From NCBI GenBank assembly GCA_964187785.1, contig OZ076410.1, forward strand, positions 28,396,001 through 28,460,000: DNA of 64,000 nt. Direction: 5' to 3'. A model generated the notes under the pieces. It was not told where the DNA came from. It made no database searches and saw only the letters and a list, made by a program, of their open reading frames with translations. Source of the stretch: Amphiscolops sp. MND2022 (Eukaryota). Positions within the stretch are counted from its first letter, which is position 1, and each line of letters opens with the position of its first letter. Shown piece after piece: positions 1,676 to 33,718 of this stretch. The translations under genes and the position numbers were made by a program.

Positions 1676-1676
1676 A

Positions 1677-2325: not shown

Positions 2326-2326
2326 A

Positions 2327-9270: not shown

Positions 9271-9373
9271 CATGTTTACAATTACCTCAACAGAATGATT
9301 GTTGACATATTTAACTTACCAAAATCACACTATTTGCCCATACATCACGCTGTAGTTCCCAGACTTGGGACAA

Positions 9374-9679: not shown

Positions 9680-10023
9680 CTGATCATTATAGTGAATACG
9701 TCCTTGAATAGCGTTGGTACGCCAGATGTCTCTTTTGATAGTTGACCGTTTCTGGAACTCGACGATTGTTCAAAGTACTCTACTTCAGCTTCCTACAAGA
9801 GACAACTCTGCTTTTCCAAAAGACTCATACAACAATTCATATGATACAACAAGTTTGATTCAACTGATCGCTGCACTTGTTATAGTCAAATTAGTTGTTT
9901 CTGCTGTTTTTCATCTCCGAGACTATGAGAGATGACCAAAACGAGTTTTTGATTGGCTACCCAAAGCGCTTGCAAATGCTTGAAACCATTCACTTCAAGC
10001 ACTTGGCTGTTTCTTGACCTGAA

Positions 10024-10520: not shown

Positions 10521-11095
10521 ACATTGCAATACTGATAATGTCGAAAGACAATCTACACCTTACCCTTTCTACGAACTTAACACTTTCAGTTATAACAACA
10601 GCTCATCTGGACAGTGATTGTAGTCAAGAAGATTGGTGTATTGAACTGATCAAAGAAGAGTACAAGAAAGTGGGTGAACACAGACTACTACGAAAGGCGG
10701 TCATCAGCTTATCTCCAACTGAATACCAACAATTCCTGCCTAGTACAAGCTCTGTTGATTCTTTTCTCAAGTTCGTCAGTACAAACCATGTCAAATCAAC
10801 GTCTCCAGAAATTGATGAAAGATCACAACATACCTCCTCCAAAAATTCCCAAACCATCTGATCCCGTCATTCTGTCCGGTGTCGAAGATCCTTTGTTACC
10901 GGTACAGATAGCGAAAGAACTACCATCACGGGATGATGTTGTGGAAATAGCCTATTTTGCCCCTTTCAGAAATTGGAGAGGTCAATTCAGAGTAACTTTC
11001 AAGAAAAATGGAAACTTTAATTCTTGTCGGTTTCATGTATGATTTAATTTGTATTCTTCATAAACATAATTCAAATCTTTGTCTCATTCTCTTTT

Positions 11096-11377
11096 TTGAT
11101 GGCAACGCAAGCCGTCGATACCACAGACGCAATCGGCGTCGAAAGTTTAGTTTTTCAAGGTGATCAGAGTGAACGCTCATCTTGGAAATTCTGCAATTCC
11201 ACAACCTTACCGCGTTCTGAGGTAGTTTTTTTCTTCCAAGCACTAATTTTATTGATTCTCATCATCGCAGTTCTAGTGAAACTACTTTTTTATGAAGTAC
11301 CTCGCGAAGAGATGCCATTCTGGGTGTCACTTTTATCTGCTGCAGTCGGGTATATTCTTCCCAATCCACGACTATGA
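11096..11377 (+). CDS. Small two-TM membrane protein of the Maverick, upstream of the ATPase
   Basis: Intact ORF; two hydrophobic helices ending SLLSAAVGYILPNP. Confidence 0.65.
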   Translation: MMATQAVDTTDAIGVESLVFQGDQSERSSWKFCNSTTLPRSEVVFFFQALILLILIIAVLVKLLFYEVPREEMPFWVSLLSAAVGYILPNPRL

Positions 11378-12085
11378 ATAAAATAATTTTCACCAGTGAC
11401 CGTCTGTTCATGTCAGTCGTTGGGCCAGGAGGTTCCTGGAAAACCAGGTTGATTTTTTCAATGCTTCCGTCTGAAATTCGAGAAAACTTACTATTTCTAC
11501 AAGGAATATCAGCCTTTGTTCAAAGAAATATCAGAAAAACTGGATTTCGAGTTTGTCTCTTGTCTCAATATCCAAATGATCAAACAACTAGAGAATTGTC
11601 TCCATGTCTTTGACAATTCTTGTGAAGAAATTTATCAAGAAAAAGAGTTTGTCAAGTTGGCTGTTGCTGGCAGACCCCGAAACGTACATTGCATCTTCGT
11701 CAAACATAATTTGTTCCATCAGAGTAAGTGGTCGCGTACCATTGATCTCAATACAACACATATCATTCTCTTCAAATCACCCAGAGATTTGCAACAGATT
11801 GATCACTTCGGTAGGCAGTTAAAAAGGTTGACTTTCTTCGAGAAACCTACCTACAGGAAAGCAACATCCGAACCCTACGGACATTTATTGGTTGATTTAG
11901 ATCCAAAAACTAGGGAATATTTACGTTTTGCCTCGAACATCACAGCCCCTGGCCCCAGTATCTTCCATTTACCGTCAGAACTTGCGAGGCAAACGAACCT
12001 ATCAAATGAACGCGAAAAACGTGCTTACACTGAAGCATTGGCAGAGCAGAAAAAGCAAGAAAGAATACAGAAAGTTTCTATGTGA
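11374..12085 (+). pseudogene. FtsK/A32-like DNA packaging ATPase (frameshifted)
   Basis: Walker A-like VVGPGGSWKT, Walker B-like LHVFDN, AGRPRNVHCIFVKHNLF, RTIDLNTTHIILFKSPRD. Confidence 0.88.
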
Positions 12086-12311
12086 ATGTGATCCTGAAAG
12101 CCTCAGGTTTCTCTGCGATTGCGCTTTCAACATTATCAACGGCAACGTACCTTTCGATGTTGAAAAATTATTCCCTTACGAGACACAATTGAAAGTTTTG
12201 TGCGATAGTTCAACGTCGCCCAGGAAACGTCGAAAAACACTCTGCTCAGTCAAAGGAATAAAGTTACTTCAAGAGATAAGTCGGTCTATCAAATCTCATC
12301 TTATGCAATGA
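12006..12311 (+). CDS. Small conserved Maverick protein between ATPase and integrase
   Basis: FLCDCAFNIINGNVPF...YETQLKVL...RKRRKTL pattern; its tail is also present at 1-139. Confidence 0.6.
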   Translation: MNAKNVLTLKHWQSRKSKKEYRKFLCECDPESLRFLCDCAFNIINGNVPFDVEKLFPYETQLKVLCDSSTSPRKRRKTLCSVKGIKLLQEISRSIKSHLMQ

Positions 12312-13838
12312 CTTCCCATGAATTTATTTTGGTTCCGACAGAAAATTACATTGAACAGCAACCAAAAAGCTTGGAAATCCTAGATGATGCAACAATCAAC
12401 GAAAAAGTAAAGATTTTGACTCTTTTGCAGAGACAACAACCACCCAAAGATCCAAAGGAAAACAAGACTCAGTCCACCTTTTCATCAGAACCCGAGCGAG
12501 ACATCATTGAGAAACAGGTTTTGAAATCACTGTCAATGATGAAAACCTGGCAGATAGAAAAATCGAAACCTATTCTCCGGAAAATTCATGACTCACCTGA
12601 TGTATCAATAAACGAAGATGGATTTCTGACAGTTGATGACAAAGCAACATCACTCGAAGCAGCCAACTTTCTCTTCAAATTACAACAACCGAAGACAGGC
12701 TTACATGATCCGGATTATAGAAAAGTTTTGTCAAAACTAGAACTTTCTCCCCAATTAGTCCCCAATTCTGACGCTAAAAAGATTCTGCAGCCCTCTGTTT
12801 TGAGAAAGAAAGTCACCGCTTCGAGAAGCAAAACTCCGAAAAATGTCAAAGAAAGAAGACACTTTCGGAAGATGAATCAGTTAACGAAGATATTGAAAAA
12901 GAAGAGACTACAAAGAGACGTTGGGACCCCCTCTGAGGCCGAGATCCGGAAGCTTGAAGATTTTTACAAAAAGGGACCAGCTGCTTACGGCAGTGTCGAG
13001 AACTTAAAGAAAGCTAGTGGTTTAAGTTTGCGGAAAGTTGAAAATTTCCTGCAGGGTAAGAATGCTCAATCAAAGTATCGCCAGTTTCATCGCCGGTTTC
13101 CACGTCTCAAAGTTATTGCATAGGATATCAACGAAATCTGGTTCATAGATGTTGCATACGTTGACAAGCTGGCAAAATACAATCATGGTGTAAAGTACCT
13201 GTTGGTAGCCGTTGACGTTTTATCACGGAAACTGAGAGTTGAACCAATGCGATCAAAAACTGCCGGGGAAACTGCTAAAACTTTCGCTCGAAGGATTACG
13301 AAGGAGAATCCTGAGAAAGTTTGGGGACCAAATTCAAAGGAGCATTCGAGCGGTTTTGTGAATTACACAATATTGAGATATACACAACTCATAATTAGTC
13401 AAAATCAGCTTTTGCGGAACAAAATATTCGGTCTCTGAAAAAATATAATATACAAACACCTCGAAAATAAAAGGTCTTATCATTATATCAAGGAATTACA
13501 GTCTTTCGTTATGACTAATAATTCTCGTGTCAACAGAATGACTGGCTTAGCCCCTAATAAAGTCAAAAAGCATCATGTATCACGGTTGATTTCATTGACA
13601 GCGGAACGCTCATCCGAACTAGTCAAAAAGCCGAAATTCAAAGTTGGAGACAGAGTTCGTATCGCTAAACAAGATTTGCCCTTCCTTCAAGAAAGGGTAT
13701 AAGCAGAATTTCACTGACGAGATGTTTCGAGTTACCAAAATTGCAACCTTCAACCCACCAACATACTACCTCGCAGATAGTGACGGCGAAGACATTGCCG
13801 GGAAGTTTTACGAACCAGAATTGGTGAAAGCGCGATAA
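12308..13838 (+). pseudogene. Unknown ORF plus Maverick retroviral-like (DDE) integrase, disrupted
   Basis: Same motifs as 136-1675; TAG at 13121-13123, an additional small deletion near 13326 and frameshifts. Confidence 0.88.
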
Positions 13839-13839
13839 A

Positions 13840-14700
13840 ATGAACAATTTTGACATTTACATCGAATCTACTGGGTCAATGGATGCTTACCCCGGCAATA
13901 AAATGGCTGTTTTTCGTAACCTTTTACCTGAACCGTTGCAACTGGACGGGGACTGGAGAGTAGCACTAGCTGAAATTATTTTTCGTTCAAGTATCAAAAA
14001 CATTACCACAACTGGATATATGATATACTCTCCTAAAACACCGTTCGACAACATGGCGCGTCCGATGTCAGATTTGAGCGGTGCGACCATAGTAAGACAG
14101 GAGGATTGGTCCAATAATGCCACCTTCAACGCTGGAGAGTACCTAACAGTGGATGAAATGCTGAAACTGTTGGAACTTGGGACCTCTACAAAAAAGCCTT
14201 TAGCTAAGGCTGAAATACAAGACAACCGAGTGCAGCTGAAATTCAATCAAGGTTACGGTCTTAGTTTCCACGACCGGAGTATCTTGAATGTTTTAGGCTT
14301 CAACAATGTACCAGATACGATTCGCGGTGATTTTTTTATTGGCTCCAATAAACTGGTTCAAGAGCAAGCTCAGCCAATCAAAAGTGACTTTCCCATTGAT
14401 ATTACTTCTGGAACCGAAAGTTTCTTTGTCTATTGTATTATGATAGAAAAACAAAACATTGTAGGAAGCAAGGCGCCTATTTTACGTGTCATTGACACAA
14501 AAAGAAAGCTGAAAGACGGTGGTCTCACGGTGACATCGACAACTACCCATAGAAGTTTTCGTGAGTTGCAATATAAAAAGTTAGTTTTGAGCTCCATCCC
14601 AGAGATTTTCATTGAACTAGTTACTGCTACTGGGGACTACGATCCATTTGTGGGAACTGGTAGGGTTGTTCTCACACTCAAGTTCAGGAAGTGTGACTAA
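13840..14700 (+). CDS. Maverick minor capsid (penton) protein
   Basis: Intact 286-aa ORF; FRNLLPEPLQLDGDWRVALAEI N-terminus and VGSKAPILRVI...LTLKFRK C-terminus; position before core and MCP. Confidence 0.8.
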   Translation: MNNFDIYIESTGSMDAYPGNKMAVFRNLLPEPLQLDGDWRVALAEIIFRSSIKNITTTGYMIYSPKTPFDNMARPMSDLSGATIVRQEDWSNNATFNAGEYLTVDEMLKLLELGTSTKKPLAKAEIQDNRVQLKFNQGYGLSFHDRSILNVLGFNNVPDTIRGDFFIGSNKLVQEQAQPIKSDFPIDITSGTESFFVYCIMIEKQNIVGSKAPILRVIDTKRKLKDGGLTVTSTTTHRSFRELQYKKLVLSSIPEIFIELVTATGDYDPFVGTGRVVLTLKFRKCD

Positions 14701-14701
14701 A

Positions 14702-15074
14702 ATGCAAAACTACTATTCTCGCCAAGCAACCTTGCCTCATTTTTCCGGACATGCGCGTCAGAGGGGTAATGGAATTGGATCGCTGGCACTAGGGAGTGGG
14801 ACGAGTTGCGTTACCATTTGCCAAAAAAGTTCTCTTACCCGCTGTCAAGTCTATGGGCAAAGATTTACTTGTTCAAAGTTTACCCGAATTGATGGAAGTT
14901 GCCTCAAAGAAGAAATCTTTCAAACGAGCCGCGAAGTCAGCTCTGAAGAAAACAGTCAAAAAACAAGTAGGTGGAAGATCACAGCGGAAATCAAAGAAGA
15001 AAAACAGTCGACGTAAAAGAAAGCTACTGAGAAGTCGGTCCGATTTTTTCACTAAAGTCAAAAATGTCACCTAA
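14702..15074 (+). pseudogene. Small basic core-like protein, frameshifted
   Basis: RQRGNGIGSL plus K/R-rich tail; same +1 frameshift as in 2327-2699. Confidence 0.65.
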
Positions 15075-16383
15075 TAATTTACCCGTCGAGGCTAACCATA
15101 GCAGCTTGGATCTCTTCAAAAAGCCTTCACTACTCGTTACTTTTCATACCTCTTTCGAGCAGAAAGTTGGACCTCTGTATGCTCCCAACGGTCCTACTTC
15201 GGAGTTCGAAGTAGTTGGAGATCGCACTAATTTCATCGACCTTCAAAACATTTATTTGGAAGTCAAGTGTATATTTTTACAAGCCAACAGAAACAACCTG
15301 CGATATGACGCGACGGATGCTTTTCTCACTGATTCGCCTTGTTTCGTTAACAATACTCTATATTCTCTATTTTTTGATTGCACGGTTTCGGCGAATGGTT
15401 TCAAGATTTCGTCATCGAATGGTTACTATGCACAGAAAGCATTTCTCGAGACCGAGTTTTCTCACGAAAAAGAAGCCAAGGACACTTGGCTGAAATGTCA
15501 AGGTCATTCTTATGAGAAATCACCTGCTACCTTCACAGGTGCTACCTTCACCACCCGACAAGGAGAAACAAAGGAGTCTACTACCATTAATTTCATTGGA
15601 AAAGTTGCTGCTGATGTTTTTTCCTGTGACAAGCATCTTCTCAGTGGGGTTACACTTCGTATATCTTTCCTGAGAAGCCGTCCCAATTTCAGTTTGATAT
15701 ACGATGACGATGCCAAAGATTACAAGATCGAAATTTCTCAAGCAAACTTGACTGTACGCAAAATGACAGTATCTGAAAACGTTTACTCGGCGCTCGAAAG
15801 TACACTGGCTAAAGCTTCGGCTATGTATCGCTATACCGAAATCATTCCAAAAACGTTCAACATTTCCAAGGGTTCGAAAAGCTGGAATCATGAAGACATT
15901 TTCAATCGTGAGCCAATTAGACGTTTTGCGCTAGCCATGACCACGAATTCGTCTTTTCTTGGCGCGAAAAGGGAAAACCCTTTCCACTTCCGTAAGTTTG
16001 ACTTGGAGAGTATAACTGTCTTGCGGAATGGTTATCCTATTGCCGGAACTCCTTTGCAGACAGACAATAACAAAAAACTGTATTTGAATTCGTTGGAAGC
16101 TCTGGCTTTCAGTTCCCACGGACATGGTATTCCAATCGATGATTTCCCTGATCATTATGTTTTAGTTTTCAACCTAACCAGCACGCAACAAGCATTGCAT
16201 GATTACTTGTATCCTGAGTTGACTAACGGATCAATTTCAATCGATTTGCGATTCTCGAAGGACATATCAGACGGTCTAGAACTTTTCTTCTTGGGTGAAC
16301 GATCTTCAACTATCTACATCAATTCTGCTCGAAAAATTCGCAAAAACTTTTATCTGGAGAGCGAAAGTGACACAAAAAAAATG
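15064..16383 (+). CDS. Maverick major capsid protein (open; reads through into the protease)
   Basis: First ~440 aa of ORF 15064-16752; MCP motifs as at 2689-4006. Confidence 0.88.
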
Positions 16384-16790
16384 ATTGGCGAAATTGCACT
16401 CTGGGAACTCAAAAACAAATGCAAACATCTCAAGTTCAAATTTTCAGGAGTCTATGCTGCGGATAATTTTCCCTTAGCCCTTGACAGAAATACTTTCGTT
16501 TTCGTTAACTCGGATAAAGCGGAAGCACCTGGTACCCACTGGCTCCTTTATTGTAATCGAGAAGTATTTGCCTTCGGCAATCCGCTTGGACTACCTCTAT
16601 CCTATTATGAAGAAATATACAAGCGATTGCAATTCAAAAGTTCACAGTCACGGAACTTGTTAAACATCAACTCCAGAAGCCAACTTCTAATCTGTGTGGT
16701 TTATACTGTTTATACATTGCTCATTATGTGTTCAGTTCTCATTTTCCAATGATACCTACAATATCGGAAGTTGAACTCTTACGTTTTGTA
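16381..16790 (+). pseudogene. Adenain-like cysteine protease, C-terminally frameshifted
   Basis: FSGVYAADNFP, FVFVNSD...PGTHWLL, AFGNPLG. A second frame at ~16670-16740 carries a Q...SNLCGLYC-type catalytic-Cys segment. Confidence 0.82.
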
Positions 16791-17048
16791 AAACATACTC
16801 TCTATTTCTGCTGTTTTTAATTGTTCTTCGAAAATAAAAGTTGTATCGTCAATTTTTTTTCAAAATCAATCAGATCTTAGAACAAAAGAAATTGATTCAG
16901 TTTGTTGTATTCCGTGTTCGTCAACCATGATATCAGTTATTCTCAGGAAACTAGCAGCACGACTTCCGTTCAGAATATCAGTTATGCGTTCAAGAAAACA
17001 GTTGGACATTTCTCCCGTTTGCACTGCAATGTTTCTCATCGATTTGGG

Positions 17049-17345
17049 TCAAGGGATTTTTTCTTGGTTTCTTTTTGCCTGCTTGAAAAATGAATTTTCA
17101 CCCAATTGTTCGTTGTAATGAACAACGCGTTTTAGTTTTAGGAATATTTGCCCACTTTGATGAAGCGATTGGCTTTCATGCAACAAGAGAAAATATGTTG
17201 AATCAACACAAGGAACTCTATGCTCGCCTTGTTTAGGAGGCTTGTGCCCATCAATTTCGAGTAGCAGGTGATAGTGTTTTTCTCTAACTGGACAGAAGAT
17301 ATCATGATCATCCGTATGAAGATCGAAGGCGTAATTGTTTGACAT
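17049..17345 (-). CDS. Unknown Maverick accessory ORF (contains KHYHLLL)
   Basis: ORF track; probably a fragment of a longer decayed ORF. Confidence 0.35.
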   Translation of the reverse strand: MSNNYAFDLHTDDHDIFCPVREKHYHLLLEIDGHKPPKQGEHRVPCVDSTYFLLLHESQSLHQSGQIFLKLKRVVHYNEQLGENSFFKQAKRNQEKIP

Positions 17346-17528
17346 TTCCGGTGATATTTTTGGCTCTGTGTAAGCTATGAAGTACCTGAAGTTTTTGCGA
17401 AATTTGAGAAAGTAATCAGGCGTTTATTCGATCATTGCTTCAACTATTTCAACTGAAAAACTTCCTATTTTTACTTTTAAGCTCATTGTTGTTCTTAAAT
17501 GGATGGAAAAGAAGTTTATTTGAAAAGT

Positions 17529-17813
17529 TTAAATATTTATTGAAAACTCATCACATTTGAAACAGAATTGAATTAGTTTAACATTTACTAATTTTTCTTG
17601 AAGGTGACGATGCAATTGGCGTGTCTGGTCTTTTGAGTGTGCAAGGCAACGGTTCCTTCTGCAGGTCCGTAGCAGCCCCATGCTGATATTCTCCACGTTG
17701 TTTATAATTTCTTGAAATTCTTGTACAGTCAGTGTAATTCGTTCATCGATGTAAAAGTCGTCGTCTGATCCTTTCTTGAAGAGTTTGAGGGAAATGTAGG
17801 AAGCTGTCTCCAT
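17529..17813 (-). CDS. Small accessory ORF, possibly PC4-like ssDNA-binding
   Basis: YISLKLFK...RITLTVQEFQEII pattern. Confidence 0.35.
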   Translation of the reverse strand: METASYISLKLFKKGSDDDFYIDERITLTVQEFQEIINNVENISMGLLRTCRRNRCLAHSKDQTRQLHRHLQEKLVNVKLIQFCFKCDEFSINI

Positions 17814-18264
17814 ATTCTTGATCGGTTGTGGAATTGTAGGGCCGGCTCATTTGATTTTTATAATGAAATGTTATTTCTAAGATTTGCGATCTCAACAGTC
17901 AACTGTCGGCTTTGGTGATTTCAAGCTAATGACTATGTCTGTTCTCGTAAAGTGATAAGTACTCTCAATACCATGCGCACGTGAAACAGCTTAGGGTCAC
18001 TATTTCTCGGTTTCTGAACAAATTTTTATCTTTTGTTTACAAAGTTTCTCGTTTGTTAATCTTGAAAGTATCCGGTCCGCAAGTTATGAATCATTTCAAA
18101 CACCGTTATCTCGTATCAATGTTATGACCGTTTGTTTTATTGTTTAGACGTAGTACATGTAACTAGGGTTATAAACAAATTTTGTTTACATGAATAGACT
18201 TCTCTTAAACAGTTTCTGGTCACTTTGATAAAGAACGATTCAACATTCAGTTTTTTGGAGAACA

Positions 18265-18963
18265 ATGAAACTTCAAATTCAAACTTTCACTGATTCTGAT
18301 GATTCTCTGCGTTTCACTTTCAATGAAAGTTGGTTCAATAAACCCAATATCGTCGTTAAAGAGGAACGATTCAGCGATGAGGACTGGTCTGTGGTCAATT
18401 CCTTAGCAATTCCTAAAAATCTCTTCAGTGTTCTCATGTCAACTAGTCCCGCGCCAAGTTTGAGCTCTAATCTTTCTCTAGGTGTGACAGATGACACAAC
18501 TTATCGAGCTAAAAAAGTTGAAGATCGACTACATCTACCCTTACACGTTCGAAAAAAACTTCTGGATCGTGATTGTGAAGAATTACCGCTGTATGAGAAC
18601 CAGACCGTGTATTTTAACGATGTAGAAACTCTGGAATGGTTCTGGGATATACCGAAAGACGACGGAAAGTTGCATCATGGATCTGATGCCGACACGAACC
18701 TATCTCTCCCGAACACTATACCTGAATGTGATGGTGGCATTTTCATCTGTGAGACGCCTAGTACCGCAGCTGCTTTGGAGACGCCACCATGCTTGATCAA
18801 CACAGATGGGGAGGAAACTTCCATGCGTGAGTCCCCCTCCACTCCGGAAACGAAAGATCCAATGGATCATATAGATTGTCCCCCTGCACCGAAAAAACGA
18901 AGAATCATCAAACGACCTAGTATCCCCATCAAAGTGCGACCTCTCACCTTTTCCGAGTTCTAG
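18265..18963 (+). CDS. Unknown acidic/Pro-rich protein with C-terminal basic NLS-like motif
   Basis: Intact 232-aa ORF; PAPKKRRIIKRP. Confidence 0.6.
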   Translation: MKLQIQTFTDSDDSLRFTFNESWFNKPNIVVKEERFSDEDWSVVNSLAIPKNLFSVLMSTSPAPSLSSNLSLGVTDDTTYRAKKVEDRLHLPLHVRKKLLDRDCEELPLYENQTVYFNDVETLEWFWDIPKDDGKLHHGSDADTNLSLPNTIPECDGGIFICETPSTAAALETPPCLINTDGEETSMRESPSTPETKDPMDHIDCPPAPKKRRIIKRPSIPIKVRPLTFSEF

Positions 18964-19379
18964 TGTTTTTTCCTCTAATTTTGTTGATTATGTTTAATCG
19001 TGCTTCGCTTTAAATACACCGTACCTTGTTAATCATGCTTCTTTTTCGATACATCGTAACATTTTTCTGTAAATTAATTTTAATATGGCTTGTTTTTTCT
19101 CATTTCGATGTTGAGGTGTTCATCCTTAAGTTTGTCTAGGCAGAGCTTGGTTTTCTTTTTAAAAAGTTGTTAGCAAACGGAGCCTTTGGGCAAATATTTG
19201 TTCATTTACATGATAGTTTTATTGCTTGCAATTTTTATGAGTTGACCCAGTTTTGGGGAAAAAGCGTTAGTCACAGCTTGTGTCATAAATTTATTATAAC
19301 TTGTAAGCATTTCGCGAGACAATTTTCTCGAGATACAAGTTCTCTCATTATTTTTCGCTAATACCTCAAGTTGAGTTGA

Positions 19380-22300
19380 AAATGATCTGAGAAACATTCA
19401 CGGAGAGACTCCTCTGCTTAGGAAAGATTTAAAATGTACTCAGTGTAATTTCACCTGCACGTCAGTGTCGGAACGCAAGCTACATAAACAAACGGCCCGT
19501 TCACTACACGACACGAAATTGTGTATTTATTGTAGGAAAGTTTTCCACTCTCTGAAGTCTTTCAATTCTCATCTGTCGAGTGTTCATTCCCTTCCACCTG
19601 TATTGTCTTCTCAAAACGAGAGAACTCATCGTCCTGAAATTTCAGCTCTTGATGGCATCGCTGATTCCTTCTTCTTGAAAGCCAGTCCGAATGACTACGA
19701 TTTTTTCAAATTTATGATTGAACAAAAGCCAATAACCAAAGAGATAATATCCGAAAGTCTTCAAACAGAATCTCGAAAAGTAGAATTTTCCGCTGATTTG
19801 ATCGTAGAAAAGCCAGCTGTCTCTATTGACGATGATGGACAAGAAATAGCCTTTCATGTCAATTCCAAGCTAGAAGCAGTGTATCTTGCTGATGGTCTCT
19901 CTGATGATGCCTTTTCTCGGATGCTCGACAAAATGCTTACAAGTGTTATGAGCTTCTCCTCCCATGGGAGTGGTTGGATCCTGCAGAAGATTATCGGATT
20001 GAATATTCAACTAGTTTTCCATGTTCCCATCCGCGCGTCGTCCTTTATTGCACTACCATCTTCTTTGTAAAGCATGGCTTGCTTGCTCAACATTCGAAAC
20101 CGTAACGATAACAATTGTTTTCTCTAATGTTATGTCGCCGCTGGCACTTCAAATTTGGCCCAAGTCTTCTTTACAACGTTAGTTGGCGCTTGCGTACAAG
20201 TCCTGAGACGTATAGCAGGTCTAATTTACTGGCACACCAACCTGTTGGTGGTTTTGAAATGCCAATGGAATTTAATCAGATTCCCAAGTTCGAGCGCTTC
20301 AATAATGTTCAAGTCAATGTCTTTCATTAACGAAAGAAGACGTTGATTCCTGTTCTCATCTCAAAAAATAAAGATTCTCGCTTTGTTATTGACTTGCTAT
20401 TACTTACTGATGGACAGAGGCATCATTATGTTTAGATCAAAGATCTCAAAGTGTTTGTTAATAAAATTAGAGGCTTGTCTCCTCGTTCAGGTACTGTACT
20501 TTGTCGAAATTGCTTCCATATTTGCTCAACTGACGAAATTTATCAACGTCATGTTCAATCCTGCTTAGAACACGAAGCCGCCACAATCAAAATGCCTCCA
20601 CCGGAGAAAAGCACGCTTTGTTTCCTGAATTATCAAGCAAAATGGTTTGTTCCTTTTGTAATTTACTTTGATTTTGAATCCTTGACAAAGCCCGAACAGA
20701 GTTGTTCAAATAACCCAGACGGAAGTTTTTCCCAGACGATTGAACTTAACGAACCTTGTGGCTTCTGTGTAGCTGTTGTCGAACTTGACAATCCAAAACC
20801 AGTTTTCATGAAAGTTGAAAGATCACCAAAATGCATGCAGAGTTTCGCTATACTGCTACAACAACTAGCTAAAGATTTTTACGGTAAGAAACAGTTACAT
20901 CGAGTCTACCATGGACAACCTCCTTGCGCTAATTATTCTGTTTGCTGGTTGTGTGAAGCTCCTCTAAGCACAACTGAGAGAGTGGTAGATCATTGTCATT
21001 CCACTGGAAAATTCTTGTGTTTCGCGCATAGTAAATGCAACCTTAAGCGACGAACTGTCAATTATATTCCTGTAGTGGCGCACAATTTATCAAATTATGA
21101 TCTCCTTCACATTTGCAAAAATCTACATTTCTTCTCAGAAGATTGTCGAGTTCAAGGTTTACCGCTGAATACGAAAAATATGTTTTTCTCTCCAATGGTT
21201 TCAAAGTTGACACCTACATTGATTCACGCGGTGTCGAAAAGAACGTTTATGAATACCTACGTTTCATTGATTCATACAGATTCATGGCTTCTTCCTTGGA
21301 AAAGTTAGTTAGTTTTTTGCCAAAAGATAGCTTTCATCTCCTTGATCTTACTTTCTCAGACCATAGCCAAGCAGACTGTGAACTCCTCTATCAGAAGGGA
21401 TATTACCCCTACTCTTATTTCGATTCTCATGTAACGTTCAATGAAAAACAACTTCCTCCTAGAAAGTTCTGAACCAATTCCCTACAAGATGGTGCAATAT
21501 CAATTTCGGAAACTGAATTTGAGCACGCTAAGCACGTATTTGCTGTTTTTAATTGTGAAACTCTGGGAGACTATCATGATCTGTATTTATTCAGCGACAC
21601 ACTTTTGATAGCTTGTGTTTTCGAAGCATTCCGCAAGATAACTTTCTCAACTTATGGTCTCGACAGTGTCCACTTTTTTTCTTTCTCAAACCTATCTGGG
21701 GATGCTTTCCTTAGAGTCAGTGGAGATGACGTCGAGCTTCTGACGAATAGAGAACATCTCGAGATGGCAGAAAATCTCAAAAGAGGTGGTGTTGCTTCAG
21801 TTTTTTCAAAACGTCTAGCGACGATGAATAATGAGTATTTGACTACCTATGACGAAATGAAAGCCACAACTTCTGCTATAATGTTGGACGCGAATAACTT
21901 CTACGGAGGAATTATGGAGAAATTTCTTTTACCTCTGAAAGATTTTGCAATGGATACAGAGACTCAGCTGAGTAAAATTCTAGCTACACCTAACGAATCG
22001 ACTGTTGGTTATGTTCTAGAAGTTGATTTAGAATATCCTGACTCTCTTCATAATCTTCACAAAGATTTTCCCCTGGCACCAACCAAGGAGAAGGTGGAAA
22101 CTGATTGTTTATCGGATTATCAGTTATCTCTTTTACAAACAATCGGTCAGAAGCGAATAGTCACCCAGAAATTAGTTCAAACTCTTCACCACAAACAAAA
22201 CTAGACTATTCATTACATCACTCTCAAACTGTACGTTAGTCTTGGATTAAAGGTTACGAAAGTTCACCGCGTCTTGAAATTTACTCAAGCGAAATGGATG

Positions 22301-23260
22301 GAACCTTACATCATTTTGAACACAGATACGCGAGCCAAATCAACTAACAAGTTCGAAGAGTCATTCTTCAAGTTGATGAACAACTCATGCTATGGCAAAA
22401 CGCTTGAGAGGAAGAGGAACAGAGTAGCTGTAAAATCACTTTGGAGCCGTGAAGAAGTTCTGGATAACACTGACAAAGCCTTGTGCAAATCGGTGAAGAT
22501 TTTCGACGAGAACCTTATCGCTGTGACACTCCGAAAAAGCGAAATTGTCTGGGATACACCCACAATTGTAGGAGCTTGCATTTTGGACCTTGCAAAGTAC
22601 CATGTGTACCAGTTCCACTATAAGGTGAGCTTTTTCTGGTATTTATTCATTCGTCTTAGCTCTAGCTCTTTGTATGCTCTTAGATTTTTGTAACTCTTGA
22701 ATAACATGCAGTCTCTTCTTTCCGGTGATGAAGCTGAATTTCGATTATTCTCTACTCTACTCAGTCACTGATTCTCTGTTATAGGAGATTCGAGGAGATG
22801 ATTTTTACAAAAAGCTGTCCAATGACACCCTTCTAAAGCAACATTTTGACTTTTCGAACTACCCACCTGACCATTTCTTGTACAACACTGAAAACAAAAT
22901 GGTGACACTGAAGTTTAAGGAGGAAATGAGGGCCTCCGCTATCAAGGAATTCGTTGGTCTGAAAGCCAAAATGTATTCTACTGTTTATGAAGACAAACAG
23001 AAGATGTCTGCGAAAGGTGTTTGCCGGTATGCTCAGTCTTCTCTCAATCACGAGGTCTACAGAAATGTTCTGATGACAGGAAGTTTGATGCGGTCTACCA
23101 ACATCAGAATTGGGGCACAGAAGCATATCCTGCGAACGATCCGAAATTAGCAAATTTCTCTATCTGCTTTCGACGATAAACGATTCATTCTCGAAGACGG
23201 AATCACATGTTTACCGTTCGGACACTTTGAAATTCGAGATCTTCCAGTGTTCCGTGAGAT
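19380..23260 (+). pseudogene. Protein-primed family B DNA polymerase with EndoVII-like insertion, N-terminal zinc finger and probable intron
   Basis: CIYCRKVF...HLSSVH; N.DNNCF; YFDFES; VVDHCHSTGKF..FAHSKCN; HNLSNYD; FIDSYRFM; KGYYPYSY; DANNFYG; KLMNNSCYGK; YSVTDS; FKEE..EFVGLKAKMYS; many stops and frameshifts. Confidence 0.93.
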
Positions 23261-23879
23261 TGTACAAGATGATGACTGGGGTTCTTCTCAGAGTCTTGAA
23301 ACTGTAACAAACGGACAAAATGAACTGGCTTCATCACCTTCCTGGTCCCAAATTGTCAACGTTTTCAATGTCTCACCTCCTAGTAAGGTCCCATCGCTGG
23401 TTGATTTAGTTGTAAGTGATGAGTCAGATCAATATGTGGACTCGGAAATGTTATCCCCCTCGTCTGTTCATATTTTCTCGCGCCAGATCCTGGTTTCAAT
23501 CAACGCGCCTACTCTGACGACGAACGTGAGGATTTAGCTGACTTCAACGAGGACACTGCCGACTATTCATTGACAAGAGGACGTAACCCCTTCATAGACG
23601 TCAAGGCGCAGGAAATAGACGAGAGTTTTGTGATATCTGATTCTGAAACACCCACAATTGCCTACACCCAGGTACCAACTTCGCCGTCATTGTTTCAACC
23701 CAATCCCAAACGTAGACGAGTTGTTGTTATCTCTAGTGACAGTGATGAGTATTTTTTCTGTTCTTTTTTCAGTCTTTTCTTTGTGATCTTACCGGAAATT
23801 GAATGATTCTTGAGTTTTTCTAGTCTTTTTTCAGAAGCTTTGCAGGAAAAACTACGTTGAAAAAAAAGACAAAACATCT

Positions 23880-25380
23880 AATATGCTGCTCTAAAAAGCT
23901 ACGAGCATGCCAAAAGCTATGCCAAAAATATCCGTGGCAAAATGCTGCCGGAAAAACTTTCGAAAAGAAACTACCGCCAAAAACAAGCGTACCGAAATGC
24001 TGCTCAAAAATCTGCCGTACAAAAGCTTTGCCAAAAACATCCGTAGCAAAATGCTGCCGAAAAAACTACGAAGAGAAACTATTGCCAAAACAAGCGTACC
24101 GAAATGCTGCTCAAAAATCCGCCGTACAAAAACTATCCCAAAAATATCCGTAGCAAAATGCTGCCGAAAAAACTACGAAGAGAAACTTTTGTCGAAATAA
24201 GCGTACCGAAATGCTGCTCAAAAATCTACCGTAGCAAAATGCTGCAGAAAAAACTACGAAGAGAAACTGTCGTCAAAATTAAGCGTAGCGAAATGCTGCT
24301 CAAAAATCTACCGTACCGAAGCTATGCCAAAAATATCCGGAGCAAAATGTCGCCGGAAAAACTACGAAGAGAATCTATCGGCAAAAATAAGCGTACCGAA
24401 ATGCTGCTCGAAAATTGACCGTATAAGAGCTATGCAAAAATATCCGTAGCAAAATGTTGCCGAAAAAACTACGAAGAGAAACTATTGTCAAAAATGAGCG
24501 TATCAAAATGCTGCTCAAAAATCTACCGTACAAAAGCTATGCCAGTAAAATCCGTAAGAAAATGCTGCCAAAAAAACTACGAAGAGAAACTATCGCCAAA
24601 ATAAGCGTACCGAATTGCTGCTCAAAAATCTGCCGTACGAATGCTGTGCCAAAAATATCCGTAGCAAAATGTTGCCGGAAAAACAACGAAAAGAAACTAT
24701 CGCCAAAAATAAGCGTGCCGAAATGCTGCTCAAAAATTGACCGTACAAGAGCTATGCCAAAATATCCGTAGCAAAATGCTGTCGAAAAAACTACGAAGAG
24801 AAACTATTGTCAAAAATAGGCGTACCGAAATGCTGCTCAAAAGTCTGCTCAAAAGCTATGCCAAAAATATCCGTAGCAAAATGCTGCCGAAAAAACTACG
24901 AAGAGAAACTATCGTCAAAACAAGCGTACCGAAATGCTGCTCGAAAATCTGCCGTACAAAAACTATGCCAAAAATATCCGTAGCAAAAGGTTGCCAAAAA
25001 AACAACGAAGAGAAACTATCGCCAAAAATAAACGTGCCGAATTGCTGCTCAAAAATTGACCGTACAAGAGCTTTGCCAAAAGATCCGTAGCAAAATGCTG
25101 CTGAGAAAACTACGAAGAGAAACTATTGTCAAAAATAAGCGTACCGAAATGCTGCTCAAAAATCTACCGTACAAAAGCTATGCCAAAAATATCCGTAGGA
25201 AAATGCTGCCGAAAAAACTCGAAGAGAAACTATCGCCAGAAATGAGCGTACCGAAATACTGCTCAAAAATCTGCCGTACAAAAGCTATGCCAAAAATATC
25301 CGTAGCAAAATGCTGTCGGAAAAACTACGAAGAGAAACTATCGTCCAAAGTTAGCGTTTCGAAATGCTGCCCAAAGTTAA
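23880..25380. repeat. Tandem minisatellite, ~105-110-bp unit, about 14 copies
   Basis: Recurring aaaaatatccgtagcaaaatgctgccgaaaaaactacgaagagaaactatcg...aagcgtaccgaaatgctgctcaaaaatctgccgtacaaaagctatgcc. Confidence 0.92.
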
Positions 25381-25613
25381 TCGTAATAGTGGAAATCATA
25401 GAAAAGTGTTTTCAAAAAAGTTTCAGCCCTTGCACTTCAACTTTCGACCATTGCCGGTTTATGAGCCCCAAGATTTGAATACTCGAAGCTGTGCGGTATT
25501 GATAACACCACGAGGGTGACCTTTATTGCCTCTTCTCAGGCTATGATAAAAAAACAAGAAAAATATAAGTTAAACACAAGACAAAATTATCAAAAACTGT
25601 AGACACAAACTAT

Positions 25614-26069
25614 TTACAATCGCCTGATGTCTGAGTCCATAGCTCGGGCCTAGTTGACGCCTAGACGTGGGTCTCCCTGGACTCTGACTAGACAGTCCTT
25701 GACTCCAATGGTTCTCAGCATCAGTCGGACCATTGGTGGTCCATTGATGCCAACTCCTGCTGGTGCTGGTCGAATCACGAATTTGAGCGATCCTTTCTGT
25801 CCTCTGGCTTCACGTGGAATCGTCGAAGGATTGTTGAGAGGCGGGTAACCCAACTCTATTTGACGCCAGTTAAGGCTGGTTCTCGATTCGACCGCTCTCT
25901 CTGCAGCCCTGTCCTGCTTTCTAATTGCTTCCGCATAGCCATAAAAGCCGTCGCCGTCTCCTGCCATGGCAATGGCTTGATAGCGAACTTCTGGGTTCAG
26001 TTGGTGGCTTTTCTTTTTGCTGTAAAGTGGCCGTACTTTAAGCGTTTCCTCAGTTATCTCCTGAAACAT
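25614..26069 (-). pseudogene. Divergent ribosomal protein uS5 (eukaryotic RPS2)-like ORF; one premature TAG near the C-terminus
   Basis: EETLKVRP, RYQAIAMAGDGDGFYG, LGYP, PSTIPREARGQKGSLKFVIRPAPAGVGI, TIGVKDC, VN*ARA parallel recalled uS5 motifs EVLKIMP, RFKAFVAIGD.NGHVG, RGYW, PHTVP.KV.G.CGSV.V.LIPAP.GTGI, AGI.DC, NFAKA. Confidence 0.8.
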
Positions 26070-26367
26070 ATGGTGTCATAATGCAAAAACCGGTGAGCAT
26101 ATCTATAGTTTGAGTGCGATCAGTTTTAGACTTTAAAAATTTTCATAGAGCATTAAGATTGTGAGTCAAAGTAAAAAGATTCCCCTAACTCTTATGTCGT
26201 CGTTATCATCATCATCGCTGATTATTTCTGCGACGTCGTCGCCCATTGAGTTGTTAACGGCATCCTGAAATAACATGTGGAACTTCATGTTTTGGTTCTA
26301 CCAATCTATTTTTTGAGAGATTGGTAATTGGAAATTTAAAGAACAGATCGAGTTATCCATTAAGATG

Positions 26368-26652
26368 TCAGTGAAAAAAACTTACTTCATTGTCGGAAAT
26401 TTGAATGACTTCTTCATTTTGTGTGTCTGGTTGTCTGGGTGAAGACGGGGGTGATAAATCCATGGGTTCAGAGTCATCCATATCAGTGCTGATGTCCCCG
26501 TACCAGCTCTCCACATCGTATCCATTATATTCGTATTCGGAGTTGCTCGGGCTAGACATTTTTTGAAGAACTGCAATATTGGAGTCGATTTCAAGATTTT
26601 GAAAAAAAGATGCTAAGAAATGATCTGAACTGTTTCGATTTTTCTGGTACAA
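26368..26652 (-). CDS. Unknown small acidic/Ser-rich ORF
   Basis: ORF track; low-complexity acidic composition. Confidence 0.35.
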   Translation of the reverse strand: MYQKNRNSSDHFLASFFQNLEIDSNIAVLQKMSSPSNSEYEYNGYDVESWYGDISTDMDDSEPMDLSPPSSPRQPDTQNEEVIQISDNEVSFFH

Positions 26653-26989
26653 TGTTTTGTTTTCGCTGGATTTTCCTTTACAATTTTCATATGAGAATTA
26701 TCGGTCCTTGAGACATTTTTTCTCAGTTTCTCATGAACACAAATCGTTAGTTTTGTTTACCAGCATTGAAAGTGGTTGTACCTCTTTTTTATGATTTGAA
26801 ACTTAAATACTCAGCCTGCTTTGATGAAACTGTTTATCTCAGTTGAAGCGTCTATTTTTCTCGGCTGAAGAACTACTATTTTTGTTGATTTTCTTTGTTA
26901 GGTATTTCTTCAGTTTCAGCAAGAGTTCAGTTCACCTGACTGCCTTTGCTTACATTAGAAACTCGCGGACGGTGCTGATATCGCCTTTA

Positions 26990-27238
26990 GTACGTAAAAT
27001 AGGTCACCACTTTCTCTGCTCAGACACTATGTAAACAAAATGATTTTGAAGTGCTTTCTTTTGTTTGCTCAAGTAGCAGTGAAATTTTATCACCCTGCGA
27101 AAGGCATAAAATTGATCTCAGGGTCGTAAAATTTCCGGAAGCCAATCCCCCGTTGAAAGAGTGGAGTAGTCACCGACCCGTTGAAAGAGTGGAGGAGTCA
27201 CTTGACCCTCTAATCACCAAAAAATTTTACATACTACT
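26990..27238 (-). repeat. Right terminal inverted repeat of the Maverick
   Basis: Reverse complement of 9031-9270; ends ACATACTACT. Confidence 0.92.
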
Positions 27239-28978
27239 ATTCTTAGTTGAAAAAAATGCAACGAAAAGATCATTGTTGTCAGTGAAGCACCTAATTGGTA
27301 TAAAATTTGATGAGTTGGCATCTTGATGCAGCATTTCTGAAAGGAATTGGCGAATAAACATAATGGAATCAAGAGCTTCTAATAGGGCTAGGGCTTCTGC
27401 TGTGTGCTCCTACTACTCGCATGAGTCTGAGCTCCAACATAATGGACATGCTTCATTCTTGCCGTCAGTAATAAAAACAACATATCCACCTTGGCTACCG
27501 CCGTTTTTGACAAATACCAAATGAGGTATCGCTATTAGCAACAAATAATAAAGCTGTCAGTTGCAATTTGCTGAAATATAGAGAAATTTAACATTTTTAT
27601 GGTCCTATCTATATCTCTGGTCAAATTTGACGAATATTCCCACAGGCGCGTGGATAATACGTTCACAGAAAATTTATATCTGGTCTGGTTTGACTTGCAA
27701 GCCACGATGGATGCCCTAATTTCGCACGAAAATCTTTGTTTGAAACTTCACTCGATTCTTTAAGAAACCCAATCCTTTTAGCGCATCCATTTTGGTTCAT
27801 CAGTATGCAATTTTTTAGTTGTTCCAATTCCAGACCAAGGTAATTGGAAGACGACGAGTACGCAGTGCCAACTTGTATGGTAGCTTGAATACGACTAATG
27901 ACTTTTTCTTCGAAGATCTCATTTCCACCCCTAATAAAATCGTCAACGTGCACATATATGAGTCCGATAAGAGAATGCCTTGTCAAGTGATGAAACTTTT
28001 CATTCCGCCAATTCAAACGTGTTTCGAACATTCTGGTACCATTTCAGTGAGGCATCAGCCAATCCATAAACATTTTTTTTGAGCTTCCAGATTTTAGTTG
28101 TATCAACCTCCTTAGGCGGGTATTGATCAATTGGACGAGAGGGTTGTTCTCCTTGTAAAAATGCAGATTTAATGTCTATAGTACTGATTGTCCAATCGAG
28201 AGATGCCGCAAAAGTCAAAAGAATTCTGAAGGCCTCTTTCATAGACGTTGGGGAATGTTTTTCTATTGCATCAAATTCACTTCAAAGCCTCGAGCGACCA
28301 AACGAGCTTTAATTTGGCCCTCCTTCTCTGTCAACACCTCGATACCTTCATCAAGATTCAACTGTTCACCGCTCGTAATAGGACTGCTTGCGGACTCTCC
28401 CGAAACATCATTCAACTTTATTTCTGTTTTGCACGGGAAAACAGCATTGAAATCATCGTTTTGAAACTCAATTTCTAACGGCTTCGATTGGACGGAACTT
28501 GACTCAGTCTTTGCAGCAACATATTCAATCATTGGCAATGGACTGGCATTTAAGCTGCCAGCAGTTGTGTTAATTCGCTTGAGCACTCGCTTGCTCTTAT
28601 AATCGTCCCTCCATGTCTTATAATGACGACAACACCATCTTGGCCTATTATAACTCCAGGACCGTTCCAGTCGTCATCTCGTCTGTAATAAACATGATAA
28701 ACATGAGTAAACTGTTGACTTGATTTGACCACGCAAAGCACGATTAAATTTTTCACACGCTTCTGCTGCTAGAAAACTTTTTCTTGCTAACTGCATCAAA
28801 TATAGATGTCTTTGGACATACTCGCATTTGGATCTTGGTGCCATTGCTGCTGGTTCATTTACAACGACCAACGACAAAGAAGGAATCATTCCAAAAACCA
28901 GCTGGAATGAACTGTAGACACTATGATTGCTGAGTGAGTCTTTAGCAATCAAAGCCCCAGGAAGTGCAAGCTCATAGG
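27239..28978 (-). mobile_element. Ty1/copia middle piece (integrase C-terminus, RT, RNase H start)
   Basis: SSFQLVFG; WNGPGVIIGQDG; QIKARLVARGFE; TIDIKSAFLQG; KLKKNVYGLADASLKWY; YVHVDDF; CFTDNN; copia order IN-RT-RH. Confidence 0.9.
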
Positions 28979-29369
28979 AGTATTATATGTGCGAGCTGAT
29001 CAGGTGTGGGGGGGTGCAACACCCTCATGTTTTAAGATAGGCTATAGCGCCTCAGCTCGAACACGACTCGCTTCTCGTGTGGTGCTGGCTCGTGCTGCCG
29101 ACATGAGTCGTGCTGATTTGCTGATTGGCTGAATCAAACAAGTCGACTACATAACCTTTATACATTGAATGTATAAAGGTTATGTAGTCGACTTGTTTCC
29201 AATGTATAAAGATGTGTTCAATGTACGAAGATAAGGAATAGCTTCGGCAATGTCTTAAGATAGTGAATAGGGTTTTTTCGGCACTTTTTTGGCACTGTGT
29301 GACATTTTCGGCATTGTGAGACTTTGGGTAAACATACAACTTTGGGTGGCTGCAGCCGCCGCCGAGCAA

Positions 29370-29470
29370 TATTTTTTCAGCCTGCGCAATATATTATTCG
29401 CCTGCGGAATATTTTATCCGCCTGCGGAATATTTTATTGGCCATCGGAATGTTTTATCCGCCATAAACGT
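29370..29470. repeat. Subterminal ~20-bp tandem iterons (aatattttatccgcctgcgg), mirrored at ~49050-49150
   Basis: Four to five degenerate copies at each end, in inverted orientation. Confidence 0.8.
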
Positions 29471-29582
29471 TGAGCTCATTACTTGAATACTATGTGTTGA
29501 GGAAAAAATCATGTTTAAGTAGAAAAAAAAACGAAATATAATGTATAAATTTGTTACAAATGTATTTAAAAAAAAAGAAATG

Positions 29583-32500
29583 TCAAATAGTTAGTGGACG
29601 AGTGTGAATTCTATCTTCCTGAACTTTACGCTTAGGATAAAAATAAGAGAGTCCTTTTTTCGTCTGTTCGTAAGTACCAACATTGTGTTAAATTACACGA
29701 AAACCACGGTCACGTTGAGTGTCTCTTCTAAAACTTTTCTATATTTGGACATTGATCCATCGCCACTGCTTCAATGCTGCTTTAATGCTGCCTTATCCTC
29801 TTGTTTGATCCTTTGCTGCTAAACTTGAATTTTGTGATTGGTAATCAAAACAGCAATACGTCTTGCTGCACAGACACAACATTTCTGTGCAACGGAATTC
29901 TTTCTAGAAGAGTCCAGGTTCGCGCTTGTCATGTTTCTTGTGTTTTGTGCAGCAAGTAGGGGGAAAGAAATTTACATTGGCTCTGAAGTCGTCTGCACAA
30001 TCCGAGGATCGGAGATCTATCCGCTCTCGGTTTTCATCAGGGTGAACAGTGTCTTATAATTCTTCTTCAACCAATGCAAGAATAAGTGAGTCTGTATCCA
30101 TTTCAAGCATCTCAAACTTATTAATGTCACAATGCTTGTCGAAAAAGTTGTAATAGAGCTCCAACTTTCACAATTTAGCATATTGCAGAATGAAGAATCC
30201 AACAATGATTGGTTCCCTGTGCTCATTCTCAGACTTTACAAGCTCCACCTCGTACAACTTCTCATCGATAATTTTCAGTCTCCTGAACATTTTGTTGTTG
30301 ATAGCTGCGTGCGCTTTTTCGTCGCATAATAACTTTGTGACAGCCTGACGGCTCCTGTCCATAATTTGATAGTCGTATGAACTGTTTGCGAGCAGCTTCA
30401 TTGTCTCTGCTACAACACTGGTGTTGGGATTCTCATCTCCTTCTCTTCTTGCATCGACTGCGGACTGAGCACATTTGTTGAAGCATTTCTTAGTGTTTTA
30501 CTGAACAAATCGATAAATCGTTTTACAAATCAACCCCAAACTCAAGTAAAGAGTAACAGAGGTGTTATTAGTGTTCCATTCTCCAGCGAATAGCTAGAAA
30601 TTAACATTCTCCTCGGTTGCGATAAAAATCCTTTTTGTTCAGCATAACTTTTCATCAACGATCCAATGTCATCTCTGCCCACGTTAATAATTTTAAAGAT
30701 TGGAGGAAAGTTAGCAAATTTTTGATTCTCTCCAACAATCTCTCTTCGCTGAGAGGTATTTTGTAGGGGAAAGACTGACGTAATAGCTGCTTGACTGGAA
30801 CGTAGGTTTCGTAAAGCTGCCACCACTCAATTCATACATTTCCATAACTGTATACCCCTTTTCCAATAAATAATGTCTTTGCAACTCATCCATCTCTCTC
30901 TTTTTGTTCCCCTCTGTAAAAGAAGGACCTGCTTCTTGAAATGGACAGTAATGATAATAACACCCCATGGCTTCAAATACAGTGTTACAGTGTTCACAGA
31001 AACCGTCAACGCTGAAGCAGTCAATCTTTTACTGTGTTCCTGTGGTGTAGGAGCTGACAATTTTACAGTCTGGTCTGATTCGTTGATAGTAAGACATTAC
31101 CATGTTCTCAAAGCTCCTGGTCTTGTTCTGAATCTACCAGACTTTGGATCGAGATCCCATTGCGTGTAAAGACCAGTAGGCATTTCCTGACACATTGAGA
31201 AGGGGTAAAGCTGACTAACATCAATGCCCACTATTGATTTACAAACGTTTGCTGAAGTACGGATAAGCGTCTCGTCCACAACAGCTTTTCTTGTAAATAC
31301 AATGGATGGACCACCAACCATATTGTCTCGTATCTTATTAAGCAAGTCTTTATCGGTCTCTGTGAAAGGGTAAAATTTCACATTTGTTGATTTGTGGAGA
31401 CACATTTTGGCTAAATTGGGTCAAGTACAACCAAGGTTCAACATATCAATTCATTTGTGGTGGTAAATGCAATCATTTTCTGCATAGCCTCCAGTGTGGG
31501 AACGACGTCCTTGTTATTGTACCAGCGCAAAAAGTCTTCGAACGTAGTCATTTTCTCAGTTTCCCATATATTGACGCAATTCTCATACTTTTGCTTGCCT
31601 GTCAGTGGAGGTTGATTCAATTGCAACTTGATCAAAGCGGACTCTGGAGATGAACCACTCTTGAGCAAGTTTTCAATTTCAGTATAATCACTCTCCAGGG
31701 GGTTCGAATTTCGCAATTTGTTGAAAAATGACTCATAGGGAGGTAATTGCGTGTCATTTAGCTTTTCAGGACAGTCGAACCATTCATATGTGAAGTAACT
31801 TTTCGTCTCTGACGTCTTGTGAGCTTTGAGGAAAGAATCAAGCTGGTTGCTCCACCCAAGAAATTCAGAATATCCAGCAACGGAACATCTCCAAATTTGA
31901 AAGAGACAAATTGATTCGCTTTTTTCTTACTGTTGGCTCCAGCTCTCTCTCGATAACCAATAACGGTAACAAATAATGCTTGATGATGTTAATGTCGTAT
32001 ATGGAACTATTGTAGCCAAAGACTGGTAACACGTTGCAATGTCTTTCCAAGTGTTCCTGCAAGTCAAGAAGTTGATTCGTTTGCATTTGCAAGAATTGAG
32101 TAGAAACGTCTTTTCCTTCAACCTCAAGACATTCATCTTCAAATTCCAACACAATATTTCTTGGTCCGCCTCTTCCATTGAGTACAACAAAAACTGCAAT
32201 GAGACGGCTTTTGATGCTAGTCTTGATATCTAAAAACTGTAGTTTCATTTGAGCTTTGCTCTGTGCGGCTAAACTCTCCAGAGCAACAAAAAATGATTCA
32301 ATCGAATCTCGCCGGTTGGAATTGCATAGAAATATTGGGGTTTCAATCAAAATGGACGATATAGATACAGATATCGGTACGGGCTTCCCAATCCACTGTG
32401 TTGTCTCGGTATCCTTGAATTGTTCCTCTCTCACACAAATTGATTCAAAGTCAAAGAAGTTTATGAACAATTGCTGTTTTTTTGTGTAAGGTATGGAAAG

Positions 32501-33718
32501 GAAGTCCAGTTTATCAAACAGCGTTTCACTCAATTGATACTTATTTCTCGGGTAAACGTGTTTGATGCGATCCTTGCAAATAACCAAGTGACGTTCCAAA
32601 TTTCCAGTTTTGTTGAAAACCTGGTTACCATTTGAACAACGATAAGCTTTGAATAATGCATTGTTATTGGAGACGTAACAAATGTGAGTATTGTAACGCA
32701 ATAATCTGGCAGTGTTGCAATACTTCTGAACACTCCTCCGTGCGAGTTCACCGACACTTGATCCACCCACAATATCGATATCGTAACGAAAGATAATGAC
32801 TTGAATCAGGTCTTCAACAAGAGGAATATCGTCCACGCAGACTCCTTGGAAAGTTGCTGCTCCTATTTCTCCTTCCTTTTCCAAATACCAATTGAACAAT
32901 TTGCAAGTCTCTTCCTCCAATTTTTCATTTCCGTGGAGATGAAGTGCTAATACTCTGAATAAACACAATTTGTCGTTATAGGGTTGTCTAGTGTTCTGCT
33001 CGAATGTCAAACAGTTCACAGTATGATTTTTCGGTAGTGGATCAGGGAGTACAGCATCTGTACAACCCATGGGAATGTCTTTGAGCAGAGCAGCAATCAC
33101 AGATAGATTGGTGAGCTTGTAAAATTTCCATTTTGTATTCAACCTTTCTCTAGTACAAGATTCTATTACGTCAGTTTGATTCACATGGTTTTTCAATTTT
33201 GTCAAGTCGTCTTTAGTGCACAAAAGTTGTGATCGATCCAACAAATTATTGTTTTTGTGCGCGTAGAAACATCGGTAACTTCCATCTTCTAAATTTTTTA
33301 GAATGAATCCGAATGCGAGGTTAACTTTTGCAGCACACTTCAAGTTGTTGAAAAAATGATCAATTTTATCATTGACAATGTCCGTGTTCAGTGTTTCCAC
33401 TGCGTAATTAAACACGTTATGTCGCTCACGTTCGAATTCAGAGTCCACGAGAAAATTTTGACAGGCACGTAACTCCTCTTTGAGTCTCTCATCATCGATA
33501 CCATCAAAAAAGGAGAAGAATCGTCACTTGTTTTATAAGTGTCTCCATGTACTTGACTTTTATGTTGTCGTAATCCAAAAGAGCCAGTAAATGTGTCTTT
33601 GCAAATAATACAAATGTGAGCAACTGCGGGTTTGGGAGCTCCATGCTTCTTTGCAATGTGATAATTCAAGTCATTTTGGGACTTGGTTGAGAAATTGGGA
33701 CATTGAGTCATTGAACCA
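29583..33718 (-). pseudogene. VSR-type protein-primed family B polymerase, left-arm copy
   Basis: NDKLCLFR; FDFES; GYNSSIYD; GGPSIVF; GIDVSQLYP; VDGFCEHCNTVFEAMGCYYHYCP (VSR-like); KLLANSSY; many lesions. Confidence 0.9.

Follow-up and report, generated by a model that had tools for sequence, protein, structure and literature searches.

We examined a window of 64,000 nucleotides from Amphiscolops sp. MND2022 (GenBank assembly GCA_964187785.1, contig OZ076410.1, positions 28,396,001 to 28,460,000), in which a preliminary description had noted, inside the terminal inverted repeats (TIRs) of a Maverick transposon, a diverged frame resembling ribosomal protein uS5 (RPS2). The frame is exactly as described, being open except for one in-frame stop near its 3' end, and lies within a Maverick/Polinton element whose features are collected in the table. 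An inverted repeat search paired 9030-9267 with 26993-27239, with the two arms being 93-95% complementary over about 240 bp. When read base by base, both termini begin with AGTAGTATGTA and are flanked by the same six bases, which define the target-site duplication.

Features of the uS5-like gene, its Maverick/Polinton element and the surrounding window (coordinates are those of the window)
Coordinates	Strand	Feature	Remarks
1-4029		Second, partial copy of the same Maverick	97% identical to 12173-16407, with one internal deletion of about 210 bp relative to it; cut off by the window edge on the left and not continued to the right
9025-9030		Target-site duplication, left copy	ATTCTT
9031-27238		Maverick/Polinton element	18,208 bp, decayed copy
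9031-9267	+	Left TIR
11296-12082, 13840-14700, 15064-16380		Candidate ORFs considered for capsid, penton and packaging ATPase genes	No Pfam hit
12308-13835	+	Putative integrase gene remnants	Spread over three reading frames
16381-16802	+	Adenain-like protease gene	Broken: 1 frameshift
18265-18963	+	232-aa ORF of unknown function	Intact
19387-22717	+	Protein-primed DNA polymerase B gene	Broken: at least 2 frameshifts and 7 stops
22728-23749	+	Gene of unknown function (336 aa in relatives)	Broken: 1 frameshift and 2 stops
23911-25375		Tandem array	27/54/107-nt periods; broken into short ORFs
25405-25545	-	Nearly invariant non-coding block	Ends in a T run
25614-26069	-	uS5-like frame of the preliminary description
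25614-26559	-	uS5-like gene, three coding exons: exon 1 26386-26559, exon 2 26190-26264, exon 3 25614-26060	One premature stop
25674-25799	-	Match to the uS5 C-terminal domain (PF03719)	ORF residues 91-132
25896-25991	-	Match to the uS5 N-terminal (dsRBD-like) domain (PF00333)	ORF residues 27-58, below cut-off
26993-27238	-	Right TIR
27239-27244		Target-site duplication, right copy	ATTCTT
29300-50900		Nested inverted and direct repeat zone	Roughly palindromic around 36.5 kb; arms up to 687 nt at 99% complementarity
31865-33448	-	527-aa ORF in the repeat zone	No Pfam hit
39515-40207, 44485-45372		Repeated ORFs in the repeat zone	Weak C2H2 zinc-finger hits
56000-64000		Strongly skewed stretch richer in G+C (45-50%)	Probably an LTR retrotransposon running off the window
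61573-62664	-	Retrotransposon integrase ORF	Integrase_p58_C
62612-63658	-	Retrotransposon integrase ORF	Integrase_H2C2

To establish the affinities of the frame we searched its longest ORF (139 aa) against several profile and sequence collections. It matches the Pfam Ribosomal_S5_C domain above the curated cut-off (E 2.8e-7; 30.4 bits against 21.5), although only profile positions 2-43 of 71 are covered by the truncated ORF, whereas the match to the Pfam Ribosomal_S5 N domain (E 0.099; 13.1 bits against 27.1) falls below it. The NCBIfam archaeal/eukaryotic uS5 models are hit with E 3e-15 and 2e-12, but the scores are far below their equivalog cut-offs (56.2 bits against 252 and 47.1 bits against 181.65). 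The same ORF recovers 157 distinct PDB chains, all of them 40S S2/uS5 proteins, with a best E of 7e-12 and alignments collinear with residues about 75-206 of those chains. A profile of eight family members improves this to E 3e-19 and aligns family positions 5-150 with residues 102-246 of the 293 residues of human RPS2; eukaryotic uS5 chains score better against this profile than archaeal ones (3e-19 against 4e-15). Hence, the frame is a real but very diverged homolog of eukaryote/archaea-type uS5 (about 28-31% identity) and not a chance match. Both domains align in order and the 'GY' loop between them is present, albeit two residues shorter than in the three best PDB hits. As the preliminary description had claimed, the RG-rich N-terminal extension is absent; the C-terminal extension is missing as well.

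AlphaFold2 applied to the exon 3 product of an intact member, with a 68-sequence alignment, gave a model with pLDDT 93 and pTM 0.84, though this high confidence leans partly on the canonical uS5 sequences in the alignment. Foldseek placed the predicted structure on uS5 chains of solved eukaryotic ribosomes at TM 0.85-0.88 and rmsd 1.6-2.0 A over 146-148 columns, with identity to any uS5 being only 24-31%. These PDB alignments and the predicted fold cover the N-terminal domain that falls below the Pfam cut-off in the window ORF, and distant family members do carry PF00333 hits. The residues nearly invariant across the family and canonical uS5 proteins are G37, G44, A56, A64, G90, P101-A102-P103, G105, G107, G122 and D125, which include the glycines of the N domain and the P-A-P-x-G-x-G loop.

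To better understand the provenance of the gene we collected contigs carrying relatives of the ORF (designated L001, L002 and so on), all of which come from a few marine or host-associated metagenome assemblies, namely ERZ25074608, ERZ26859043, ERZ1742291 and a Tara Oceans scaffold, or from a Logan run (SRR22824288). The gene sits at one end of the element, just inside the TIR, and in L001-L005 it is followed, convergently, by the same neighbors: a tandem-repeat ORF, a 336-aa ORF, a large protein with the organellar/viral family B polymerase domain, a 232-aa ORF and, further on, a 142-aa ORF. The polymerase is intact in L002 (1134 aa; 13981-17385, minus strand) and hits PF03175 at E 3.6e-12; it starts with C2H2 zinc fingers and shows a weak Endonuclease VII-like match before the polymerase domain. 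The 142-aa ORF of L005 hits PF00770 (Peptidase_C5) above cut-off (E 1.3e-5; 25.4 bits against 21.3). A piece of the window's own element (13124-13435) matches the rve integrase core only below cut-off because it is a fragment (E 9.8e-6; 26.2 bits against 32.6), while the other pieces were identified by reading the frames. The TIRs, 6-bp duplication, protein-primed polymerase, probable integrase and adenain-like protease together identify the element as a Maverick/Polinton. Pfam scans of most of its ORFs gave no hits, and a Walker-A-like motif was seen only by eye.

Window positions 15554-27238 are 91-96% identical to L001 and L002, with the homology stopping exactly at the TIR end, indicating that these are independent insertions. 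In contrast, L007 shares the flank of the window's element at 97% identity (window 27239-30239 and L007 5829-8833), element and flank alike, and hence represents the same insertion sampled a second time (other haplotype, close relative or duplicate); the window therefore comes from the same or a very close genome as assembly ERZ25074608, or the region is duplicated there. Measured against the intact L001/L002 products, the window's element is dead, which the preliminary description had missed: its polymerase, which is 91% identical to that of L002, and its protease are broken, and the putative integrase is in pieces.

The gene is also larger than the frame first described. Alignment of the gene regions of ten copies showed that the ATG taken as the start overlaps a splice acceptor (TTTCAG|G) kept by every copy, whereas the ATG itself is missing in 4 of 10 copies. 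Upstream, two short exons are conserved in frame amid introns that otherwise cannot be aligned: the first runs from a conserved ATG to a GTAAGT/GTGAGC donor, and the second from a YAG acceptor to a donor that follows a conserved '...D-I-R'. The GT-AG introns, their phase 0 and the exon motifs are shared by copies 30-45% diverged in protein. Joined as they stand, exons 1 and 2 encode an acidic, serine-rich tail of 83 residues with 25 D/E against 2 K/R (pI 4.1) in place of the RG-rich extension. Each carries a short hydrophobic patch followed by Ser and an acidic run, with the exon 2 motif, of the type V-x-E-I-I-S-D-D followed by an acidic run, being kept in the copies 30-45% diverged. Compared by eye with SUMO-interaction motifs they do not fit strictly, and we describe them only as hydrophobic-plus-acidic motifs. 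Exon 3 encodes the basic uS5 core (pI about 10.6; about 148 residues), such that intact copies encode about 230 residues in total. Intact relatives end 12 residues after the window's ORF, whose premature stop is shared only with L007. In the more distant elements L011, L012 and L013 no upstream exons were found; the splice-acceptor-like TTTCAG before the core exon is present in L011, so the start must lie upstream, but it could not be placed.

Interestingly, a non-coding block of about 130 nt lies roughly 70 nt downstream of the uS5-like stop. It is 91-99% identical among copies whose exon 3 is saturated at synonymous sites and still about 70-75% identical in the distant lineage (L011 6063-6135 and L012 1384-1504), where it lies about 430 nt downstream. 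ARAGORN found no tRNA in the window, Rfam gave only chance-level hits and RNAalifold found almost no covariation, with one compensatory pair only. A fourth coding exon here was considered because every close copy has a GT overlapping the stop codon and a YAG in front of the block. However, the acceptor and the first part of the block are not conserved in L011/L012, the differences are not concentrated at third codon positions, an indel shifts the frame, and on the other strand stops occur in every frame in some copies. The block could be a 3'UTR or termination element for the convergent genes, or a small, possibly Pol III-type, RNA gene. The tandem array beyond it is present in every copy and lineage; in intact relatives it is one long open frame (428-658 aa), made of 9-residue repeats in L011.

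We next asked whether the gene might merely be a dead fragment of the host RPS2 gene, either a retrocopy or a captured piece. This describes the window's own copy well enough, as it has a premature stop, sits in a broken element and differs from L007 by 1 synonymous and 9 non-synonymous changes, a neutral-like pattern expected for decay after insertion. At the family level, however, this possibility is refuted. The conserved introns show that it is not a retrocopy, and the gene holds the same position in at least six insertions and in a distant Maverick lineage. By the Nei-Gojobori method on ten copies, synonymous sites are saturated between divergent copies (75-88% differ) while dN is 0.2-0.37, and where dS can be estimated dN/dS is 0.08-0.15, although the ratio is higher (0.5-0.6) among recent copies. 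The three main 90% clusters hold 9, 8 and 6 distinct sequences on many contigs, most of them full length. The preliminary description's suggestion of an old capture, much more diverged than a host gene or recent retrocopy would be, is thus supported, while its own alternative of a dead inserted pseudogene fits this one copy but not the family.

A profile search of 1.84 billion representatives recovered a further tier of short (119-153 aa) uS5-like proteins, 28-45% identical to the window type, which share the exon start, the shortened loop and the C-terminal end. One of them, in L011 from another assembly, has the same neighbors, including an intact 1108-aa polymerase, and L012 is a decayed version of the same arrangement. 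Between these lineages the polymerase is 63% identical, the 336-aa gene 58%, the 232/205-aa gene 36% and the uS5-like gene about 33%. In a neighbor-joining tree the element-borne forms make a single clade against 32 canonical uS5 representatives (bootstrap 70/100), which fits one old capture, with the usual caution about long branches in a distance-based tree. No family member is named in the 5.8-billion-protein collection, and no relative was found among IMG/VR viral contigs or JGI metagenome contigs.

Taken together, we interpret this as a resident gene of one clade of Maverick/Polinton elements, derived from the conserved two-domain core of eukaryote-type uS5 (probability about 0.9). How it works is inferred, in the absence of any expression or ribosome-association evidence, and more tentative (about 0.4; about 0.45 for the reading as a whole). 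Given that the predicted fold, the charge and the residues shared by all uS5 proteins are kept under selection, the core most likely still binds structured RNA in the uS5 manner, at the uS5 site of 18S rRNA or the pre-40S particle by the mRNA entry channel, where it would compete with, or stand in for, host uS5. The missing N-terminal extension is where the chaperone PDCD2/Tsr4 and PRMT3 act on uS5, while a second import signal lies within the retained core region (PMC10216425). The protein could thus reach the site without these controls and display an acidic tail there, with the result being altered translation or 40S production in cells where the element is expressed. Phage-encoded ribosomal proteins under purifying selection can enter ribosomes (PMC6375957). 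On the other hand, uS5 is a core, early-assembling protein and not one of the loosely bound, exchangeable proteins that viruses usually carry (PMC6375957), the lost eukaryotic extensions are connected to each other within the ribosome in solved structures, the GY loop is shortened, and the window ORF does not reach the uS5 equivalog cut-offs. A stronger version, in which the protein is built into host small subunits in place of uS5 and yields element-specified ribosomes that would translate differently, is not excluded but appears unlikely.

An off-ribosome role is a less likely alternative. The N domain of uS5 has a dsRBD-like fold (PMC10216425) and, with the basic core, might bind double-stranded RNA and mask it from host RNA-silencing or other dsRNA sensing, or might bind the element's own nucleic acid as a genome-associated protein, with the acidic tail recruiting or regulating partners. 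The loss of the ribosome-anchoring extensions, evolution as fast as that of the non-enzymatic element genes, and the fact that the only, non-significant, viral structural neighbors are dsRBD proteins such as RNase III and a poxvirus PKR inhibitor, are consistent with this. However, retention of both uS5 domains together with the universally conserved residues would not be expected if only a generic dsRBD were needed. The matches to viral dsRBD proteins are not significant (E above 0.05, TM 0.2-0.27); the viral structure library searched holds nothing with this fold (best E 0.067). Still more doubtful is a decoy that titrates host proteins binding free uS5 through its globular part, for example ZNF277-type zinc-finger partners, importins or PDCD2-type chaperones, and so perturbs 40S assembly or an extra-ribosomal uS5 pathway. 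uS5 does have a conserved set of non-ribosomal partners (PMC10216425), and the zinc fingers of the element's polymerase are only a coincidence worth noting, but the main known chaperone site and the methylation sites lie in the absent extension, and retention of partner interfaces is doubtful at such low identity.

Ribosomal-protein genes in viruses are known mainly from phages, such as bS21, bL12 and bL9 (PMC6375957), a survey that also mentions the capture of eS30 by a murine retrovirus and whose main text does not mention uS5; among eukaryotic viruses, eL40 of a giant virus was reported in 2024 as a first case (PMC11499249). These are mostly peripheral, exchangeable proteins close to the host's own. 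The Maverick/Polinton gene-content papers returned by our searches (PMC4028283, PMC8097293, PMC10748475 and a 2026 preprint) do not mention a ribosomal protein, and no paper found links these elements with uS5. Like other accessory genes of these elements, the uS5-like gene lies between the core modules and a TIR and is conserved within a clade, and it appears to fall outside the canonical core set of polymerase, integrase, ATPase, protease and capsid proteins. It adds a conserved non-core gene, with introns, to the Maverick gene set. Here a core protein of the decoding and mRNA-entry region has been taken by a Maverick lineage, cut to its core, given a new acidic tail and kept under selection through deep divergence of the elements. 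If it acts on ribosomes, it would be an example of a eukaryotic mobile element specifying a ribosome component and would offer a natural probe of what the uS5 extensions are for; if it acts off the ribosome, it shows how a ribosomal RNA-binding fold is recruited for element biology.
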